A DNA stretch of 64,000 nucleotides from Bugula neritina (Eukaryota > Animalia > Bryozoa), in NCBI GenBank assembly GCA_964035545.1, contig OZ037765.1, positions 28,519,504-28,583,503 of the forward strand, given 5' to 3'. This document shows, piece by piece, positions 9,643 through 63,530 of this stretch. The position numbers and the translations under genes were made by a program. The notes beneath the pieces are model-generated. The model was not told the origin of the DNA. It saw only the letters and a list, made by a program, of their open reading frames with translations, and ran no database searches. Position 1 is the first letter of the stretch. Every line of letters starts with the position of its first letter.

Positions 9643-12600
9643 ATGTCTTTAAGATATCGAGTTTACACATGTAAGGAGACCCGATCCGACAGCGATGTGG
9701 CAGCGGACAGCGCAAAGAGCAGAGCTAAAAGAGCAATGACTGCGGCTGCTGACTTGTATAGACCTGCAGATCCTCTGCTGATGATGGGAACTCTGAGGAA
9801 CTTGCTGACTTCAACGTCATATAAGGAGAAGAAAAGTACCAGAGAACCAGAATACAAAGCATATAGAGTGAGTGTGTTCAATAGTGCCACCCGTCATGTG
9901 TGGTGAAAGCCATAAGGTTTCAAACATGCTGTCTATAAACGAAACTTATCTATATTCCATGGTGTTCGGTAAAATTGGCACAGGTATTAAAGGCACAAAA
10001 AGAAAAGTAGGTAAAAATGGCACACTTTAATATTGGGGTTGGGGAATTTAGGTGTGTGGGTTGGGGTTCGGGATGGAAGTTTAGGTTTAGGTTTGGGGAT
10101 AGGGGGTTTGAATTTGACACCGGTGTGCCATTATCACTTGTGACATTTTTATCTACTTTTCCATTTGTGCTATTATTACCTGTGCCACTTTACCTAAAAT
10201 CATATTCTATACACAGTTTAGATGAAAGTTACCAGCACACATTGATTATATAATTATTCACCTACAGTGTTTATTATTTCTTGTATCAACAGCAGATTAA
10301 AATAAGAATCAGTGGATTCAAATTATTGGCAGTTACAAGATAAATATTGTCCTTTGAGTGTCTAGTTTCACAAACTTGAGATGACTGTATAGAAATTATT
10401 GTTGATCGAATTAGTGAGCCATGTAGATACCGTGATTATGTTCGAGTCTTGTATGGTGTTAGTAGTACACATGAATGCAACCGACATTTATAGTATTATT
10501 TATTACCAAGTCTATACGTGCCTAATCTTTTACTTTAAGTTATTCCCTACTTGAAAATTAAGCTTATATACACCCTATTCGATATGTTTTCGAGCATTGA
10601 ATGACTGGTGTTTATGGGGGCATGCTGGTAAGTTGCTGTGATATGTGATTGTATGTAATACACATTGTATACGTAGTTATTACCACAAGCTGCTGTCACT
10701 GTGAACGTCTCCTTATACTATTTATATCATATAATTTAGGTTTATAAATTATATTACGCATTATATGAAACAAAATTCTCAACATGTTTAAATGTTTAGC
10801 CAAGTTAAATGTTGGATATAAAAATGTGCTTTATCGAGATGAAAAACAAGCTGTTTTTATTTCTGCATTATTATGTATTTTTAGTTTAAATCTGGTCAAC
10901 ATATTCCATGTAAAACTTCCGAAAGTAGACAACCAACTTTTCTATTACTGAATACTAAGTAATTTGATAGTGGCACCTTGTATTATGTGCAGTTTTGCAA
11001 AAGTTATTGTACACAAACAAATGCAAACAATAAAAAATTAAAAAAATTCATTTTATTAAGAAATAGTGTGCCAATACAGAAAACTATCATCCACATTGCT
11101 ATACTTATATGTGAAATATATATGCAATGCAAGCAAGCATAATATTGTGCTACACAAACACAAAGGCATATGCATTTCTGTATATGATGAGTAACTTTGT
11201 ATATGAATGTATAAACTACAGCTATAAAGTCTATAAAGGTTGGAATATGCTAAATAGAATATGCAATGAATTTTCGGATACAAGTTGTAGCATATTTTGG
11301 CAACATAAGTTTTAACTTCCAGATGGTTGCAAAATACTTTGATTTGCTACGTTGAACAAATATTAATGGCCACATTTTCCTACCTAGCTTTTATTCAGTA
11401 TAATTAAACTTTTTTATCTATTTTTTACGCCAAGAATATTTTGCTAAAAAATTTTTAATTGCAACTTATGCCTTGTAACTTTATTACCTTTTACATTTTG
11501 TTGATATGTTAGGCTAGCCTCAAAACTAAAGCTTTCTCCCAGCCTGAATGCGGTGACTTCACAGAAACCTCCCAAACAACAAAGTCTGATATACGGCCAC
11601 CTTTGCTTGAGAAACTAGACATGAAATCTTCTAATGTTTTCTCTTTCGCAGACAAGTCACCTGCTTCAGGCTCGTCTGTCATGATGCCAGCACATGCACC
11701 AGAACCTTCCAGAACCAAGGGCACATCGGTATAATAATCATATTGGTAGTAAAAGTATAGCAAATCATTAATGAAACATAAACATACATTAAAGATCATA
11801 ATCTTTGCTAGAGCCAATATATGTGAAAGCCAAAATATGACTTTAAAGTATTAATGTGCAACATCTTTTGAAAACTTGGAGTTATAATTATATTAGCTGC
11901 TGTGAAATGTGAATCATGGCAAAACCTGACATATTCTTTTAATTTTAGAGAGATGGTACCCATGAAAAGACAACTCAGAAACAAATAAATTATTCTCAAC
12001 AATTGCGTCTATTGAAGGTATTTAATAATTAAAATAATGAAAAAATTTATTTTTACCATCATCATTTATCAGTAGAGAATACCTACTGTAAAGAATGCCT
12101 GCAAAGCCTTTTATACCGTTTTAGGATTGCTATAGTATAATATTGAATGAACAATAAATAAAAATATCATTAATATATTAAAACATTCGTTTATTATAAC
12201 AATAAATATCTTTATTTTATAGCTTATTAAACTCACGCAAGTTTATAGTCGCTATCCCTGTGAGAAACCCCTGATGGTAAGGGTTTTTGCTAGAACGGGC
12301 TAAGGACTTGTTTAAATGAGGCACAGGAGCAATTATGACTGGATGCTCTTCCTAACATCACCAATGGTCTTTGTCGGGGTTCGAACCCACAACTTCGTGT
12401 TCACAAAGCAAACGCTTTAACCCCTAGACCACGGCTGCTCCCTATTATCATGTATTAAATCAATTTTACTTCTTTGTACTGTTTACGTATACTTGTTACA
12501 CATATTTGTTTAAGGGTAGAAAGATGGAGTTGTTACAGATGTCACAAGAAAACACAGCCGTACCAGCAGTTAGAAGTACGCTTGACAAAAGCTTTATCAT

Positions 12601-13276
12601 CGGTGGAAGAGGTGTGACTGAAACTTGTAAAATAAAACCAGATCCCATAGCTCCTTTACCATCTCCGACATCACTGTCTCCCCTCATTAATCTCAACACA
12701 TACTCCAGAGTTCTGGCGTACGCAAAATATCGTTCCAAATGTAGTGTCACCTCATCAGTTGATAAACGACATTCTCAGAAGCGACCTGCTATTGTAATAC
12801 CATGTCATACTAACACAGTTTGTGCATATTGTCAGCTATACGATGATGAACATGAGTGTCAGGATGAAGAGAAGACAACTACATTAGAAAAGTCAGAAAA
12901 GTCAAAAGATAATATAGCGAAGCAAAGTTTATTGCCTAAAGAACCCAGTCATGAGAATACCAATCTAGTAAAGCAGTTTGCTCAAGTGAAACTAAAAGAC
13001 AAGCCTGAAAGCGAATTGTCAGAAAACAATAGCAGAGAAAGTCAAAACTTTGGCAAAGACACTTTGGAGAAAAACAAACCATACAAGAATCACACAGACT
13101 ACCGACAAAGCTGTAAATTAAACACAATTAATGCTCATAGAAGGATGGCAGATGTGTTGCCTGAGGTTCTTCCAAAAGTCTATAAACTTCGCTACACGAA
13201 GTCATCAGTTTCTAGTATGAGGGCGGGTCCAGCGACAGCTATAGACACATCGGCGGCAGCAGTTCCACTATTCTAG
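9643..13276 (+). CDS. Uncharacterised ~400-aa protein, Ser/Lys/Thr-rich and probably mostly disordered
   Basis: Exons 9643-9867, 11513-11728, 12515-13276 all join in phase 0 at GT-AG sites; the terminal exon is a 253-codon open frame in AT-rich DNA. No family recognised. Confidence 0.7.
9959..10203. mobile_element. MITE-like non-autonomous element, copy 1
   Basis: Imperfect inverted arms built from ~15-bp units (GGTAAAAATGGCACA / TGTGCCATTTTTACC) around a G-rich ggtttagg/gggttgggg core; a related copy lies in opposite orientation at ~63226-63530. Confidence 0.75.
12240..12442 (-). mobile_element. tRNA-derived SINE
   Basis: Minus strand reads GGGAGCAGCCGTGGTCTAGGGGTTAAAGCG (A-box-like)...GGGTTCGAACCCC (B box), then a non-tRNA body (GGTGATGTTAGGAAGAGCATCCAG...). 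No complete cloverleaf is evident. Confidence 0.75.
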
Positions 13277-49200: not shown

Positions 49201-49892
49201 TGAGCTAATTTTCTAAATTCAGGAAGTTACCAGAGGGTCACAATATTTTTTTAAAAAAATCTTTATTTTCACGACAAGCTCTATATATTAATATAGAAAA
49301 AAAGAAGACAACTCTTTTTTCAGATTTTTCATGTGCCACGGTCACGTCAATATCAGTGCTATTAACACATATATTTTAATTCATTTTTTCTGGTATATTG
49401 AGTTGAGATTTTTTGTATATATTTTGTGAATGCTACTAAAAAATTATGATCTTTTAATTAACAGTAATTGATTTTATCAAAATAACCTGGATGCTTACGA
49501 TGTTTAACTATTATATCATCATGATAAGGTAATAATTAGGTACTTCAAAAGCTGTTATCAAATGCTTTAGTTTATGTAATACTGAGGAAACCTTTTCAAA
49601 ACTTGACCTTCTAAGAATATTCCGTAAGATGACAGATTAATTGTGTGATAACCAGCATAGGTCAAGTATAAGCAGCCACACTTTTTGTGAGTACAATCTT
49701 TAGTTCCTGGCAGCTCCTATTTTTATTGGAAATACTTTCTTTACATTATAAGAGGTGCTGCATAGATGTCATAATACTTTATACACATACTTGGTATGCC
49801 CCATGTTATGCAGCTGCAGACTTAAACTACTGCTACTACTACTACTAATACTACTGCTACTACTACTACTACTGCTACTACTACTACTACTG

Positions 49893-49963
<71 letters not shown>

Positions 49964-50009
49964 GCTACTACTACTACTGCTACTACTACTGCTACTACTA
50001 ATACTACTG

Positions 50010-50092
<83 letters not shown>

Positions 50093-53000
50093 GCTACTAC
50101 TACTACTACTACTGCTACCACTACTACCCTACTACTACTACTGCTACCACTGCTACCACTACTGCTACTACCACTATACTGCTACTGCTACTATAGTTGC
50201 TACTACTACTACTCAACTATTACTAACGAAACAGCTTTACTAACAGTTTAACTATTACTGTTACTACTACAGCATGTTAAGCTGCTAGTTGCCTTATTCC
50301 CTTAATCCTATTTTATTTTGGTAAAGGATATTTATGATTTATTCCTGAAAACAACCCAACAGATAATTAGACTAGTTAAGGTCAGACTGGGGTATTTATT
50401 AGCTTAATGTGACAGGATTAGGGATAAGTCTGTCTGACTAATAGTTTCAGGTCTTCTACTAATTGTGGACTTGTCTGGTTAGCGTACTAGTCTATGACAT
50501 GGTGTAGTGATGATACACCCAATACAAGATGGCACAATTATATTCAGAGTTTATTTATGTGTCCTACTTTATGTTATACAGTAAGAACTTCATTTTCAAA
50601 AAAATATGAAGACAAAAATAGTGACTCTGAAGAAGAGCCCATTGTTGATCCAAAAATACAAAAAGAGTTGGAAGAAGTTGCTAAGATACAGGACTCGGCA
50701 ATGGTCAGGTGTATCAGAGAGGACGTGGCTGAGCAGGTGAGGCTGTGCTGTTTGTGTGCTGCAGGTAGAATACACTCTATAAGTGCATATAAATTACTGG
50801 ATAATGACCAGAAAAAGCTATAAAATAAAAAGAGATTTCATTCCATGAAATAGCAGCTATAGAAATATCTGTATGGAATACTTGGATACTTTGTTTAAAA
50901 TTTTAATATACCGGGCAGTAATATAAGTTCTATGAAGCTATGCCTAAGCTATGTTTTAAGCTTTTGGCTAGCAAAGTCCAACCCATCACCAAACTATTCA
51001 ATATAGTATAGCAACAGTTGAACAGCCAAAGCCTACAGGATAGCAGTACTTGTTAATAATGCTAGTACACAGCCTACTATAGCCTATAATGCTGCAGAGG
51101 TATAATAAATTGAATGCACAGACAGGAAACAGTATGTACTGAATATTGAGGAATTATTGTACAATAATTACAGTGTAAGGTGATCATATTTTTACTCTAA
51201 GCCTATACTCACTACACTAGTCTTATAATCAATACAAAATTGACAAGCTGCTGCATTCATTGTGGCTGCAGCAGTATATTTGGTCTCTCACTAGCTACAC
51301 TCTAGAGTCTAGAGTCTGGCCAGCAGCAGATCACCCACACGCTGCTCATTCACTGCTGCTCTACTACAGCTATGCTATTATTTGTATTTTATTTGTTATA
51401 TAAATTTGTTCAAAACTGTATTAATTTAATGTAGCCACAATTGTCTGCTAGAAGTTGGAATTTTGCAAAACATACAATATGTTTTTTTATTTTCATTTCA
51501 AAGACTGGTTTTGCTTCTCTAACTATTATATAATCATAAAATGAAATTTAGTGAAACCTTATTTTCTCCATTTAATGATTGAGAACGAGGAGACAACTTT
51601 TATACTCCAGTTTTCACTGATGGTAGCCTAACATAATATTATATATATCCACTTCATCATTTGTTCATTGTTTCAGTGCTGTATTAGAAGTTGTTAAATT
51701 AATAGAAATTATGAAAACTTATTATGTTTAACTACAGAGTATCTGCCCTTTAATTGGGTGTAGATACAAACTATATATATGGTACTGTATAGAGGTGGTT
51801 GTAAGAACTGTAATTACCGTACCACTCAAGTATTTGTAGAAGATGAACTTTTGCAAGGTTCTCTGTGAGTCAAACACATGCTGCTGAATACTTGAGTGTG
51901 CTAATACTATTGATTTTACTTGCCTATATATAGCAAGTGAAATACGTAAAATCAATGGCAATTTCAGTCTAACTTTTTTCACGTAGATACAGCACGATAA
52001 AAAGAAGTTATTAGATCCTCGTAGTGCCTCGAGGACTCCCTCCGCTAATAAAGAGCCAATACAGCCCACGAGGTTCACCTCCCCTTTCAATGCATGTAGG
52101 TTCTCTTCTAAATATAGACATAACTATAATCATCGTTTGTATTCATTTATAGAAAATGTTCTGAAGCTCAACCTACATGCTATTATAAAACAGCTGCTGG
52201 AAATCTTCTCACTAATTGCTCTTAACCTTATAGTGGTTTTCAGTTGAATCTATTTTATGTGTCTATTGATGGATCTTACAGTTTTGAAATACTAGGGATT
52301 TGATATTGTGAATGTCTAGTATAATTTCGTTTGCAACCAAATGTAGGTTTAAAAATATGAAATATTGTGGATGTTGATGATGTTATAATATTTTGTTCAA
52401 AAATTAGTCCACAATTGCTTCGAATTAATCCTTGTTATTTGCATAGATATGCATAACAGGTTTGTTTGATTTATGTTTAAGTCTTGTGCTACAACTTGAA
52501 ATTAACAAAATAACTCAAACAGAAAACTATAGTGAGTTTGAATTTTTAGGAAATATCTGCAGTTTCTAGTCGATAGAAAAGTACATGTTTGATAATTTCT
52601 GTTTAGGCAATAAAATATAGTGGCATTACTCATACTTCATAGTAATGTAGAGGTAAATTAGGTAATTTTTATAGTGTGTGCAGTAAGCTATAATTTGTTT
52701 GCAACTTTACTTCTCTGCAGCTCCATCAAGATCCTTAGTAGAAAGGCCAAGATTTATCTCAGATTCTGAAGCTTCAAGAAGTTTAAAACATAATGGTACT
52801 GACAGACCTGCAGTAGTGCATGGATCCTCTACATCACATAAATATAGTACGTCTCACCGTTAAATGTATTATATTATTTATTTATTACTAGATGGCACAC
52901 CTGCATTAGAGAGTAGAGAATAGCGCTCATTACACCTTGACGAAAATTATAGAATCATTTCTCTATTTCACTTTCAAGTACTAAATGATTTTATGTAGTA

Positions 53001-58737: not shown

Positions 58738-59431
58738 GTGTGTGTATGTGTAGGAAGGACGTTATGAACCATAAATATAATTGCTGCCCTAAGCTACTTT
58801 TTAAAAAATAGAGCCGATTCCCGTGAGGTATATTTGGTGAATGCATAATGATATGTATTTAATTTTCTCCCTTTCACAATCCATCTGCTTGCTGTGGCCT
58901 GGCTGCTAATTTAGCAACAGCTACATTTATATAGTTTCATATTGGTTACTTATAGCAGAGGACAGTGAATGATGAGCTATTGCAATGGATATTTTGTGGC
59001 TAAGGAGTAGTGTGGATTTTAATATATTTATCCAAGTATATATCTTCCCATTTACAAAACAGCCTGTAGACGTGTTACATGAAAGGGAACAGAAAAAAGT
59101 TTAAGTAAAACAATTACAGCAAGTGAAATTTCATTAGTTTGGGGGTTGTCCTATTGTTTTTTTGCTAATGACTTTATCATGTCTTTGTCTCTCAACACGC
59201 CCCTTCAAGCATGCAATTCCATTATGAGTAGCCTGAGTGCATTTGCCTTTTATCCTCCGCCCTAGTGGTGTTTGGTGATTACTTATATAACCTCTTGCTG
59301 AAACATAGCAAACCAAACTAATGGGAAACAAGTTGCCAATGGTAGTAGAATACAGCAGGCTGGAGATGGGTGGTGATACTGCAAGTACTAACAAGTAGCT
59401 TACTGTGTACTAATACCAATCAAGAGAATAA

Positions 59432-62400
59432 ATGGCTGTCTTTGAAAGGGACAAATTCATAGAGGATTTCAAAGCAGATTACTACAAATATGGACCTGAA
59501 GATATTCATCAACAATATAAACACCTATACAGTTTGGCTGAAGAATATACCTTAAGGGCCAAGAAACAAGAAAGAGAAACTCCAAACAGATGGATTCTCT
59601 ATCTCAAGGTAGGCGTACTATTAGTATGTTATATTCTACTAGGTTTACTTTATGCCTGCAAAAATGGTAGTGACTTGCATCTTTATAAACATAAATAAAT
59701 TGTGTCTCAATAGGAATGAGTGAATTGATTAGATATTATTCACAGGCAATGAAAAATGAAGGTAGCATGGCTAAACAAACTCAAACTATATTATCTCAAT
59801 CCGTAAATTAGGAATTATTTTATAAGAAGAACAGCTGTATAGTTTACCTTTTTTTTAATTTGTAGGCACATGCCTTATGGAATTCCTCATTACAGCGTTG
59901 CCAAGAGCATGAAATTTCCGAAATACAAGAAAAAATATTTAACCTAGAGTGTGACTGGTATGATGGAAGCCACCCTTTGAAAAATGTAGATGAACTAAGA
60001 AAAGTCACTGAGCGATGTAAATCAGAACTCAACTCTATGAGAAGAAGCTGCCATGTTCGATTCATGGAATGTGGGAAATTGATTGAGCAGATGGAGATGG
60101 GTGACATGTTCAGTCAACAGAATGAACTTTATGCAAATAATTTTGTTGAAAATGTTAAATGTCAAAGTGAACATTGCACAAGTGAAATGATTAAGTTCGC
60201 AAAGGACATCTGTGAAACGAGCGAGAAATTACTTGGAAATGCCCCATGCCGCTATGCCATTATTGCTTTAGGCTCCATAGCAAGGAGTGAAGCAACACCA
60301 TATTCTGACCTTGAATATGCCTTCTTAATTGAGCCAAACAGTGACAAATCATACTTTCTAAGACTAGCAGTTGATACATATTTCAGAATATCAAACCTCG
60401 GTGAGACTCCCCTCAAATACTACTACATAGAAGAACTGTATGACAATTACAGATCAACATCTGATGAAGTAAAAGAAAAGCTCTGGTTTGTAGACAAAGG
60501 TCCAAGTGGATTTAAAATTGATGGACTTCTGCCAAAAGCAGGGAATATTCCAACAGGAAATGGCCTCTCTGAAAACACTCTTATCTTGACAGTAAATGAG
60601 CTAATGGATCGTTATATCAGCTCAGTTAGTCAAACTGATGTTACTGAAGTTGCAGGGTTGTCAGATTTGCTGTTTAGTACAGTACTGATTCACTCACATG
60701 ATGGAGAAAAGGGTGGGTCTGCTCTGCTAGAAGATTTTAAAACTCAAAAGCATGATTTTGAAACAGATTTCATAAAGCTCAAAATACAACGATATCAACT
60801 GGAAGAAATGCGCATGAAACGGCTGATTTTGGATATAAAGAGCTTTGATTATTGTCCAGGAGACATTAATGAAGACATGAGAAATTTAAAAGTGAAAGCA
60901 GATATTTTCCGATATCCCACAATAATGGCTCATAACATTAGAATTGCATTAAATATGGATAAGTGTGACACTGCATGGGAAGTATTTGAACAGCTACATT
61001 CAAATCAAAAATGGTTAAACAAAGAAAATTTAGCTGCAATGCAGTTTGTGCTCATGTCTGCAATATGGATCCGTACCTCAGCATACCTGCAGAATGGTAC
61101 ACAAAAAGAAGAACTCTCATTTCATCCTCAACATATCATTGAGAAAACGGATGACCGATTTTTTGTTCCAGTAAAGCTTTACATAGCTATGGCTAGTCGC
61201 TTAGTTCCTATCAAACAATCAATTTTGAAGTTTGTGGGAAATGGAACTGAAGATGTAAACCTTAAAAGGAGCATGGGTGACCTTTGTAAATCGATAACCA
61301 TTGACAAAGCAGATTGGGTTTTGCGATGCAGGCTTCACTACATTTGTGGTGACTATGAAGGCGGTCTGAAACATGTTCAAAGTATTCTTGGTGCTCAAGT
61401 GCCAGATAATCCAACTTGTCTTGTGCATAGATTTCAAGACAATTCAGCAGGCATGGTTTACATTGTAGCACACCTACTTTTTCAAAATGGAGAGTTTGCT
61501 AAAGCAGTGCATTATCTTGACTGTTTGATTGACCAAATTGATGAGTCTTCAAGAGAAAAATTGCTAGACAAAGCTTATTTGTACGCAGTTAAGGGACAAT
61601 GCCTAATGACTCTGGGCAAATATGAAGAATCTGAAAACATCTTTAATAGAGCTTCCGACTTCATAAGCAAATTATTCGGAGTCGAAAACATTGAAGAGCT
61701 ATTTTTAAAAATAGCTCTAACCGCTTTACATAAAGATAAGATTTTAAAACCTCAGGAAATTGAGTTTTGTCGTACAGTCTGTGCACAGATCAGATTTATA
61801 GCAGATGCAGTTCGCTATTATCAAGGAAAGTATCCCAAAACCCTAACAATGTTCAACAATCTCAAAATGTCGTACCCATTGATCAAAGGGTTGTTGTTTG
61901 GCAACAAAGAAGATAGCCTGGTTGTTGTAAACTTCGAAATCAGTTTTGGGTTGCACTCTTTACAGTTAGCCAAGTATGATGAAGCTAAGAACCATCTTGC
62001 TAAGGCCAGCAGTTTATATAACAGGATTTTTGGAGCCACTGTGGCCACTGTTGATAGAGCTGCTATACATGTTCACCAAGGGATGGTGGAACTAAAAAAA
62101 GCAAACTTTTTAGAAGCTGAAGACTTCGCTTTGACTGCTATTGAAATTTTGGGAAAATGTGGGCAGAAATTAGGACACAATCTTTTTTCTTGTCATCAGT
62201 TGCTTGCAGAATTATATCTGGCTACTGGAAATTTTGAAAAATCAGCAGAGCAGCTAGCTGTGTGCAAAGATCTGATCCTTCAATCCAGTAACAGTGGCTA
62301 CGTTCTCACACATTCAGCCATTCACTTAGTTGATGCAGAACTCATTTATCAAGAAGCACTCAATGCCAAGAACGATATCAGAGCAAACCAGCTTTCACTT

Positions 62401-62955
62401 GCAAAACAGTTGGTAGAAGAAGTAATTGAGTCTTTGAAGAAAACTGTTCATTTTACAGTTTCCGATAGTCATCCAGATATGGCAGCAGCTTTCAGGTTAC
62501 TGGGACAAATTTCTCTGGCATTGGGTAAAAACTCTCTTGCAAAATGGTATACTAAGAAAGCACTTAAGGGTTTTTTGACAGCTTATGGTGAAGGCACCAA
62601 TCACATTGACATTTTGAAAACATTTCTTGTTCTCAGTGAAATAAGTTTGCAGAAAAATCAGCTTCCCAATGCTCAAGATTATGTTAGAAAAGCACTTCCG
62701 GAGTTACAAGAATTTTTTGGTTATGTCAGTAAACATCCACTACTAGCAGAAGCTTGGCACATTCAGTCTCAAATAGAACTAAAGGCCGGTGATAACCGCA
62801 ATGCATTAGAGCACAGTGCTATGTCGATATACATGATGGAACAAACATTTGGCTGGAACTCCAAACACCCAGCTCTTTTAAAAATAGCCACACATTTTCT
62901 TACGGTTTTTCTCATAATATACTTTAAAATAAATAGTATAGCGCAGATACTGTAA
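59432..62955 (+). CDS. ~1088-aa protein: GlnD/GlnE/DUF294-type nucleotidyltransferase, helical domain and long TPR array
   Basis: Exon 59432-59608 (59 codons, AAG|GTAGGC) splices in phase 0 to 59866-62955. Pol-beta-superfamily motif YAIIALGSIARSEATPYSDLEYAFL (GS at 60271-60276, D-x-E at 60307-60315). C-terminal ~42-44-aa kinesin-light-chain/NPHP3-type TPRs (HPDMAAAFRLLG...AL...YGE, HPLLAEAW, HPAL). Confidence 0.9.
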
Positions 62956-63225: not shown

Positions 63226-63530
63226 TGTGATTTTATTTAAAAATAGCACTGGTAAAATGGCACAGGTAAAAATGGCACCGTAAAATTGGCACGGTTAATA
63301 ATAGCATCGGTAATAGGCGCACAAATGGAAAAGCAGGAAAAATTTGCACACTGATCTTAAAGTTTCCCAAACCCCAAACTCAAACCCGCCTCTGAAACCC
63401 CCCCCCATCCTAAACATTTAACCCCACCCCAAACCTTAATATTGAAAAAGTGCCATTTTTACTTTCTACTTTGCAATTTGTGCCATTATTACGTTACCAT
63501 TTTTACCTGTACCACTTTTACGGACATCAT
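63226..63530. mobile_element. MITE-like non-autonomous element, copy 2 (inverted relative to 9959-10203)
   Basis: GGTAAAAATGGCAC-type units at left, C-rich cccaaacccc core, TGCCATTTTTAC-type units at right. Confidence 0.75.

Follow-up and report, generated by a model that had tools for sequence, protein, structure and literature searches.

A predicted DrrA/GlnE-type adenylyltransferase module joined to tetratricopeptide repeats, encoded by a large gene family of the bryozoan Bugula neritina

Two recent reviews of protein AMPylation list no eukaryotic AMPylases other than FICD and SelO and regard the GS-ATase/DrrA fold as bacterial (PMC8097203, PMC12409994), and a survey of HEPN subdomains lists the group formed by GlnD, GlnE and DUF294_C as bacterial only (PMC3710099). 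An architecture in which a domain of this lineage is joined to tetratricopeptide repeats (TPRs) has been described in Chlamydiae: the NEX2 family of Neochlamydia has 50 members, which combine an F-box (sometimes an OTU domain) with DUF294 and TPRs and carry working type III secretion signals (PMC4209131). Here we analyze a gene of the bryozoan Bugula neritina, encoded on the plus strand of a 64,000-nucleotide stretch of genomic DNA (the window; C1:28519504-28583503). We read its product as a cytosolic protein of about 1088 residues in which a GlnE/DrrA-type adenylyltransferase module, the head, is followed by a TPR solenoid, and which would act as a protein nucleoside monophosphate (NMP) transferase, probably an AMPylase, with the TPRs selecting or gating its targets; we lean toward this reading as a whole with modest confidence. 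That the head is a complete module of this type, beyond a mere Pol-β motif, is well supported by structural modeling. Proteins of this family are already present in public databases under an automatic InterPro-style name, and our search of the literature found no paper that characterizes or recognizes an animal family of DrrA/GlnE-type AMPylases.

The head was modeled with AlphaFold (AF2) on an alignment of 33 heads, giving a predicted local distance difference test score (pLDDT) of 85.4 and a predicted template modeling score (pTM) of 0.88. Foldseek comparison of this model with the PDB returned only four significant matches (E 6e-6 to 1e-4), all of them to DrrA (with Rab8a) or to the halves of E. 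coli GlnE: DrrA 6yx5_B at 6e-6, and GlnE (1v4a, 3k7d) at 2e-5 and 5e-5. All further entries stand at E 0.25 or higher, and the next unrelated ones at 0.36 or higher. Structural comparison with VIA-align against 48,161 chains gave a Z score of 25.1 for DrrA 6yx5_B, 318 of whose 339 residues align over positions 1-465 of the model, and 19.1 and 18.5 for GlnE chains 1v4a and 3k7d, respectively. HEPN domains match the second subdomain alone (Z 7-8), and the C-terminal half of the DrrA AMPylation domain (3l0i) scores Z 9.4. The model thus shows a nucleotidyltransferase (NTase) core followed by a HEPN-like helical subdomain, the two superposing as a whole on the GlnE/DrrA-type module. At the level of sequence profiles, a profile of 25 heads searched against the PDB found DrrA as its sole non-repeat match below E 0.01 (1.7e-5). 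This alignment spans the catalytic segment and the VK..I.R helix, placing VKTHIMRP of DrrA against VKADIFRYP of the window protein.

A preliminary description, made from the letters of the window alone, had read the gene as a fusion of a GlnD/GlnE/DUF294-lineage NTase with a TPR array and had set it apart from the cGAS, OAS and TENT families. The fusion is borne out by Pfam matches to DUF294 and TPR_12 together with the superposition on DrrA and GlnE, and Foldseek, which confirmed the NTase fold as the description had foreseen, agrees with VIA-align and Pfam on the separation from the other families. The features of the gene are as follows, with residues of the head and the TPR array numbered from the start of exon 2.

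59432 to 62955, plus strand: the whole gene, two coding exons, from the ATG of exon 1 to the stop codon at 62953-62955
59380 to 59431, plus strand: minimal 5′ untranslated region, beginning at the start of an RNA-Seq-library contig (run X1) upstream of the ATG
59432 to 59608, plus strand: coding part of exon 1, 59 residues from the ATG, from the open reading frame, homology to a Watersipora protein and spliced contigs
59609 to 59865, plus strand: intron of 257 nucleotides, GT..AG, from the sequence, spliced contigs and the same opening position in the open frames of paralogs
59866 to 62955, plus strand: exon 2, 1029 codons and TAA, an unbroken open frame
59866 to 60240, plus strand: N-terminal long helices, residues 1-125 (AF2 helices 2-123, pLDDT 88-96), aligned with DrrA from its residue 21
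60241 to 60777, plus strand: predicted Pol-β-fold NTase core, residues 126-304, from Pfam DUF294 and the superposition on DrrA and GlnE, with strands 130-135 and 149-155 flanking the GS helix
60271 to 60315, plus strand: catalytic motif G136-S137-x10-D148-x-E150, invariant, aligned with G-x11-D110-x-D112 of DrrA
60508 to 60525, plus strand: GFKIDG strand, residues 215-220, with the putative third acid D219, invariant; a β bridge or strand in both models
60538 to 60558, plus strand: AGNIPTG loop, residues 225-231, a family signature that reads K[TS]P[LP]G in non-bryozoan members
60778 to 61293, plus strand: predicted helical substrate-binding subdomain (DUF294_C/HEPN-like), residues 305-476, from model helices 306-476 and structural matches
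61315 to 62949, plus strand: TPR-like array of about 13 helical hairpins, residues 484-1028, from Pfam TPR_12, TPR_2, TPR_8 and TPR_14 and the full-length model

The Pfam model DUF294 (PF03445) matches the protein above its gathering threshold of 21 (27.4 bits, E 3.4e-6; residues 73-133 of a 992-residue open reading frame). Conservation was examined in two alignments: A1, comprising 33 bryozoan-type heads that are 25-49% identical to the window head, except for its 96% near-copy, and A4, comprising 25 heads from animals and bacteria. Invariant in A1 are G136, S137, T144, P145, S147, D148, E150, D219, G226, I228, P229, T230, D323, K344, R349, R403 and K450. Five of these, G136, S137, D148, E150 and D219, are invariant also in A4, whose heads are otherwise only 19-36% identical. 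The pattern of Pol-β NTases, hG[GS]-x9-13-Dh[DE]h with a third carboxylate on the following strand, is therefore present, including its strand-helix-strand arrangement in the model. Residues P229 and G231 of the AGNIPTG loop are invariant across kingdoms, and in the helical subdomain, with its KVKADIFRYP helix at 342-351 and WIRTSAYL helix at 401-408, K344, R349, R403 and Y407 are invariant. Positions G136, D148 and E150 align with DrrA G98, D110 and D112, which provide the metal ligands and catalytic base of that enzyme (PMC8097203). From its order, spacing and invariance, D219 is expected to be the third carboxylate, the counterpart of DrrA D150; the preliminary description had looked for this residue in the GFKIDG block, and every peptide it quoted (the signature at 136-150, GFKIDG, AGNIPTG, KVKADIFRYP and WIRTSAYL) is found in the plus-strand translation. 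The animal and endosymbiont members have their own signature, TPYSD[LF]E, GF.[FI]DG and VK.[DE]I[FY]R, and the D-x-E variant of the catalytic motif is peculiar to them.

The likeness to DrrA (SidM) of Legionella pneumophila (6yx5, 3nku, 3l0i) extends over its whole module of about 340 residues, and includes a G-x11-D-x-[DE] motif in nearly identical local sequence (GSLAKAQATEYSDLD in DrrA) and, in both proteins, the VK..I.R helix of the second subdomain. In contrast, the two sequences are no more than 12-16% identical overall, the window head has Glu where DrrA has Asp as the second acid, and it carries an insert of about 30 residues, modeled with low confidence, ahead of the third acid. The contexts also differ: the head is followed by a TPR array, whereas in DrrA the module is followed by domains for Rab guanine nucleotide exchange and phosphatidylinositol 4-phosphate binding, and the window gene is an endogenous animal gene, whereas DrrA is a secreted bacterial effector. 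With GlnE (1v4a, 3k7d), the head has in common the two-subdomain fold and the logic of the acidic triad. GlnE, however, consists of two opposed modules with a regulatory linker and the window protein of one, so that it does not qualify as a GlnE, and it stands outside the PII/glutamine regulatory context.

Compared with the DUF294/DUF294_C proteins of bacteria, which carry cyclic nucleotide-binding, CBS or Cache sensors, the window protein carries TPRs instead, and the animal and endosymbiont proteins form a tight family of their own. Models in the ESM Atlas of bacterial DUF294 plus DUF294_C proteins superpose on the head at a template modeling (TM) score of about 0.6. The same resource holds a cluster of DUF294 proteins of about 290 residues that lack TPRs and are mostly eukaryotic, Ciliophora being the commonest phylum. 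Their superposition covers the first 300 head residues, with a TM of 0.78 by match, and heads of this type may also occur in ciliates.

The resemblance to both halves of GlnE raises an alternative in which the head removes a modification, as does the phosphorolytic de-AMPylating domain of GlnE, or transfers UMP or another NMP in the manner of GlnD. The N-terminal removal domain (1v4a) matches the head as well as the transferase domain (3k7d) does, the best Pfam model is GlnD-N/DUF294, and the D-x-E variant, being peculiar to the family, also speaks for such a departure. However, the best and most complete match is to the AMP-transferring domain of DrrA, which is also the sole relative in the PDB at profile level, and relatives of the window protein from amphioxus and bacteria exceed the Pfam thresholds of SidM_N (PF20879) and DUF294_C; for SidM_N, with a threshold of 27 bits, amphioxus P0057 scores 40.7 bits, metagenomic P0153 52.3 and P0125 35.8. 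We consider removal, or transfer of another nucleotide, to be fairly improbable.

The preliminary description had offered protein NMPylation and second-messenger synthesis side by side. Since the closest solved relative, DrrA, is a protein AMPylase, the first is favored over the second, in which the head would be a synthase of the cGAS, CD-NTase or OAS type, the TPRs would sense a ligand and the product would activate a separate effector. Such enzymes have the same Pol-β superfamily fold and acidic triad, and the logic of a sensor joined to an NTase is common in immunity. Nevertheless, cGAS-like, OAS and TUTase structures match the head at Foldseek E values of only 0.5-2, the best CD-NTase (CdnE) reaches a VIA-align Z of only 3.8, against 25.1 for DrrA, and the C-terminal subdomain is a GlnE/DrrA/HEPN-type bundle, which in those enzymes binds the protein substrate. 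Pfam finds no GlnE, GlnD_UR_UTase, Mab-21, OAS or CD-NTase match in the window protein. By both fold and Pfam, then, the head falls outside the cGAS/CD-NTase/OAS (Mab-21 type) enzymes, and second-messenger synthesis is unlikely, retaining little of our credence. Among the PADLOC defense models, the only match is a weak one, to the unnamed candidate PDC-M70A (E 2.7e-4), over the catalytic motif.

The remainder of the protein is a TPR-like array that matches Pfam TPR_12 at 58.9 bits (threshold 30.1). In the full-length AlphaFold model, which was built on an alignment of 8 sequences (mean pLDDT 69.9, residues 122-241 below 50) and was used for TPR secondary structure only, this part consists entirely of helix pairs, with pLDDT mostly 65-95 and best in the C-terminal half, in agreement with the earlier estimate of about 550 residues of TPR-like repeats. 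Prediction of a complex between the head (1-470) and the TPR part (484-1012) gave a score of 0.00, controls not having been run, a value that speaks neither for nor against contact between the two parts. Pfam searches found no F-box or OTU in either exon, and no NACHT or NB-ARC NTPase, as would mark a STAND/NLR-like protein, in the window protein or its five long paralogs. TPRs joined to a protein-AMPylating domain are also found in FICD (HYPE), but the analogy is functional only: FICD has a Fic fold rather than a Pol-β NTase, and is single-copy, membrane-anchored and resident in the endoplasmic reticulum.

The window gene is one instance of a genome-wide family rather than a unique locus. Searching the 216-Mb assembly (321 contigs) with the head gave at least 64 matches, corresponding to about 62 genes on nine contigs, mostly in tandem clusters: 27 matches on contig C5 (11 of them within 15.90-16.16 Mb), 16 on C6, 11 on C2 and 3 on C7, the remainder being singletons or pairs. 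Nearly all paralogs are open frames of 860-2267 residues. In five long ones the head is the same and the extra length lies entirely in the TPR_12/TPR_10 array; no domains are added. The head of one paralog has 86% identity to a Bugula neritina protein. Only about three copies contain stops; in-frame TAG, TAA and TGA codons are seen at C5:11774361-11778692, C5:15101512-15102495 and C5:15116087-15117468. These copies are probably pseudogenes, as fits birth-and-death turnover within the clusters.

The two parts of the protein evolve at different rates. Identity to homologs of other species is 46-50% in the head and 25-33% in the TPR part. Among 78 paralog pairs of the C5/C7 subfamily, the ratio of nonsynonymous to synonymous substitution rates (dN/dS) is 0.15-0.44 for the head, typically about 0.2, and 0.46-0.93 for the TPR part, typically about 0.65, a value that may be inflated by misalignment of the repeat register. 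Purifying selection acts more strongly on the head than on the TPR array. Copy number, taxonomic spread and TPR dN/dS were the quantities to which the preliminary description had attached weight, and they come out as a large family, spread over several animal phyla and bacteria, with a faster-evolving repeat part. Selection on the head bears on a further alternative, in which the head has lost catalysis and the protein serves as a TPR scaffold or adaptor. Scaffolds are common among expanded families of repeat proteins, and activity of the head is a prediction only, but the carboxylates and the GS turn are invariant among the diverged animal and bacterial heads of A4, dN/dS in the head is low, and the catalytic motifs are kept in 39 of 40 sampled paralogs, the exception being a pseudogene with a stop codon. 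We give a dead head only a small probability.

An inverted near-copy of the gene lies 11.2 kb past the end of the window, at C1:28594732-28597818 on the minus strand. The two heads are 96% identical in protein (synonymous divergence, dS, 0.04), and the TPR parts 80% (dS 0.28), with one block of 100 residues only 65% identical. A mosaic of this kind, with similar dN/dS in both parts, points to gene conversion or recombination of the head rather than to differing selection, and suggests that in this pair such exchange was confined to the head.

Among homologs of the whole protein, the named ones all belong to two bryozoans, Watersipora subatra and Bugula neritina. The wider family is much larger: of the 2198 cluster representatives that an exhaustive profile search found at E ≤ 1e-3, 588 also fall at E ≤ 1e-30. 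Its named eukaryotic members are bryozoans, three Branchiostoma species and their hybrids, the annelid Owenia fusiformis and the tunicate Clavelina lepadiformis. The Branchiostoma proteins number well above one hundred, and many bear the name [quoted passage not shown]; a profile search whose alignment had a full-length amphioxus protein as its first row was dominated by amphioxus TPR proteins, making the size of the expansion visible and adding no new taxa. Every named bacterial member comes from an obligate intracellular organism: Candidatus Jidaibacter acanthamoeba, Candidatus Trichorickettsia, Rickettsia/Tisiphia endosymbionts of insects and Neochlamydia sp. EPS4. A few partial proteins of Bacteroidota metagenome-assembled genomes also match. 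The preliminary description had mentioned similar proteins in marine invertebrates and intracellular bacteria, and such proteins do exist, in amphioxus and Owenia on one side and Jidaibacter and NEX2 on the other (PMC4209131).

Heads of Jidaibacter score 99.9-129.4 bits against the bryozoan head profile, and the whole protein P0168 matches at E 1.2e-63. The Jidaibacter proteins are 3000-3700 residues long, with two head-TPR units, and P0168 begins with an F-box. The EPS4 matches are the published NEX2 family, and belong with the others by head family, tree and TPR tails. The NEX2, Jidaibacter, Rickettsia and Tisiphia proteins thus have in common with the window protein the head family, a TPR_12/TPR_10 tail and membership of large expanded families; they differ in their N-terminal F-box or OTU, their often doubled head-TPR units and their type III secretion signals, none of which the window protein has. 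Scanning 185,579 bacterial and archaeal genomes for bryozoan motifs (TPYSDLEY, AGNIPTG..) yielded no relative; the bacterial members carry variant motifs and were reached by protein searches.

Giant proteins with two or three complete head-TPR units are seen in Jidaibacter (P0168, P0177), a metagenome (P0153) and amphioxus (P0056, P0057, P0088). Judged from the predicted proteins, the multi-unit chain is a real architecture in bacteria, with the F-box first in P0168 and P0153, and the amphioxus chains may in part be fused models of tandem copies, P0057 consisting of three identical units. In Owenia fusiformis, the 1909-residue protein P0159 joins an OTU protease to two heads and TPR_12. Its domain order is that of the OTU-bearing NEX2 members minus the F-box, an architecture common to an animal protein and chlamydial effectors.

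A quick maximum-likelihood tree of 41 heads was left unrooted, DrrA, GlnE and DUF294 being too distant to serve as outgroup. A single branch parts animals from bacteria, with a Shimodaira-Hasegawa-like approximate likelihood ratio test (SH-aLRT) support of 91, and the bryozoan heads form one clade with an Owenia protein as sister (96). The closest partner of the window gene in the tree is a Watersipora protein, which implies that their subfamily is older than the split of those two cheilostomes. By sequence, the animal family and the bacterial head-TPR proteins are homologous; the unrooted tree leaves the direction of transfer open.

The gene is intact, spliced and transcribed. The preliminary description had bounded it exactly by the ATG of exon 1 and the stop codon and had given no gene structure; a two-exon model fits these bounds. 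With the exons searched as separate queries, exon 1 matches residues 3-54 of Watersipora subatra P0003 (43% identity, E 4e-12), and exon 2 matches the bryozoan-type proteins P0001-P0006 with 37-40% identity across 93-98% of its length. Exon 1 ends at the same junction as in the Watersipora protein, ...Y[LV]K/AHG, after which that protein continues AHGL.NS like exon 2, and the long frame opens at this AHG/SHG position in every paralog examined in the genome. In assembled contigs of runs X1, X3, X5 and X6, each from a different study, 59608 is followed immediately by 59866 (the joint was mapped as 59606/59864, and the cut 2 nucleotides on gives 59608/59866). One of these runs is recorded as an RNA-Seq library and the other three have no library record; the best-covering run in the RNA search is labeled “symbiont metagenome.” Contigs cover 59380-62662 of the gene at 95-99% identity to the window. 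Transcription from the neighboring paralog was considered and rejected as their source, since only 10 of 26 variant sites agree with that copy and the contigs match neither local copy exactly, leaving a diverged allele or strain. Differing from the assembly by 1-5% and matching neither copy, they show expression and splicing for the orthologous locus in other individuals or strains. The differences often fall at the same sites across the runs of the four studies, and the sequenced individual seems to belong to a lineage (a strain or cryptic species) distinct from the animals of those runs.

These observations also dispose of an origin by contamination with bacterial DNA, or by a recent insertion of symbiont DNA that has no function. 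The deeper relatives of the head (DUF294, GlnE, DrrA) are bacterial and close ones occur in obligate intracellular bacteria. Nevertheless, the gene has a spliceosomal GT..AG intron removed in transcripts, a GC content of 33-37% like that of the window (28-37%, AT-rich throughout) and a place on a chromosome-scale contig of 35.6 Mb, and its roughly 60 paralogs, spread over nine contigs, share its intron position. The bryozoan sequences group in a clade of their own beside an annelid protein, and the scan with their motifs matched no bacterial genome, so that the animal origin asserted in the preliminary description can be taken as secure and this alternative as barely credible.

The gene lies in a gene-poor, repeat-rich stretch. 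The only other open reading frames of at least 150 residues in the window, at 12506-13276 and 49755-50243 (both plus strand), have no Pfam match, and Rfam found no family at threshold in the whole window. Immediately downstream of the gene lies an element at 63238-63518 resembling a miniature inverted-repeat transposable element, with 39-nucleotide inverted arms (63254-63292 and 63480-63518, 85% complementary) composed of short GGCAC-containing repeats. Many contigs of all four runs stop or diverge at this element, as expected of a dispersed repeat.

Fold, motif and selection give good support to the enzyme class; we infer which nucleotide is used, which way the reaction runs, what the substrate is and what the TPRs do. 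In the mechanism we propose for the AMPylase reading, the head would hold two Mg2+ ions through D148, E150 and D219, use ATP (or another NTP) and activate a hydroxyl group on a target protein, to which the NMP would be transferred; DrrA modifies Tyr77 of Rab1 in this way, and GlnE modifies glutamine synthetase. The helical subdomain would take part in binding the substrate, and the variable TPR array would recruit or gate a target or ligand, giving each paralog its own specificity.

Several points weigh against this reading. The window protein has no match at E ≤ 1 to Pfam SidM_N. The equivalence of D219 and DrrA D150 comes from order and spacing rather than from superposed coordinates, DrrA D249 has no clear counterpart in the head, and the second catalytic acid is Glu, against Asp in DrrA, GlnE and GlnD alike. 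For every member of the family, enzyme class is read from fold, motif and selection alone; the fold does not separate AMP transfer from the UMP transfer of GlnD, nor, given the similar scores of the two GlnE domains, transfer from phosphorolytic AMP removal. As to diversifying selection, no dN/dS above 1 was found, in pairwise comparisons only, and between the gene and its near-copy dN/dS is alike in the two parts, 0.44 and 0.39. Finally, the transcripts represent the orthologous locus elsewhere and not the exact window allele.

A role in immunity, symbiont control or allorecognition is a conjecture on circumstantial grounds, suggested by the tandem lineage-specific expansion, the faster-evolving recognition part and homologs that are apparently effectors of intracellular bacteria. 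The proposal of the preliminary description that ligand binding to the TPRs switches the enzyme on is likewise conjecture, its grounds being copy number, tandem clustering and the faster evolution of the TPR part. More tentatively still, and with considerable doubt, we propose that some marine invertebrates (bryozoans, amphioxus, and certain annelids and tunicates) hold large, diversifying repertoires of DrrA/GlnE-type AMPylases, each with its own TPR array and with ancestry common to the bacterial head-TPR proteins, which may act in these processes as an intracellular arm of recognition and modification and may constitute a third class of animal AMPylases beside FICD and SelO.

Small, well modeled and with its catalytic residues plain to see, the head lends itself to direct study at the bench. 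Animals encode complete, conserved and transcribed DrrA-like modules, in dozens to hundreds of copies, on variable TPR arrays, and the same family occurs as effector-like proteins in endosymbionts of amoebae and insects. If the enzymes are active, they would represent an unexplored protein-modification system in animals, and would clearly exemplify the sharing of genes by hosts and intracellular bacteria.

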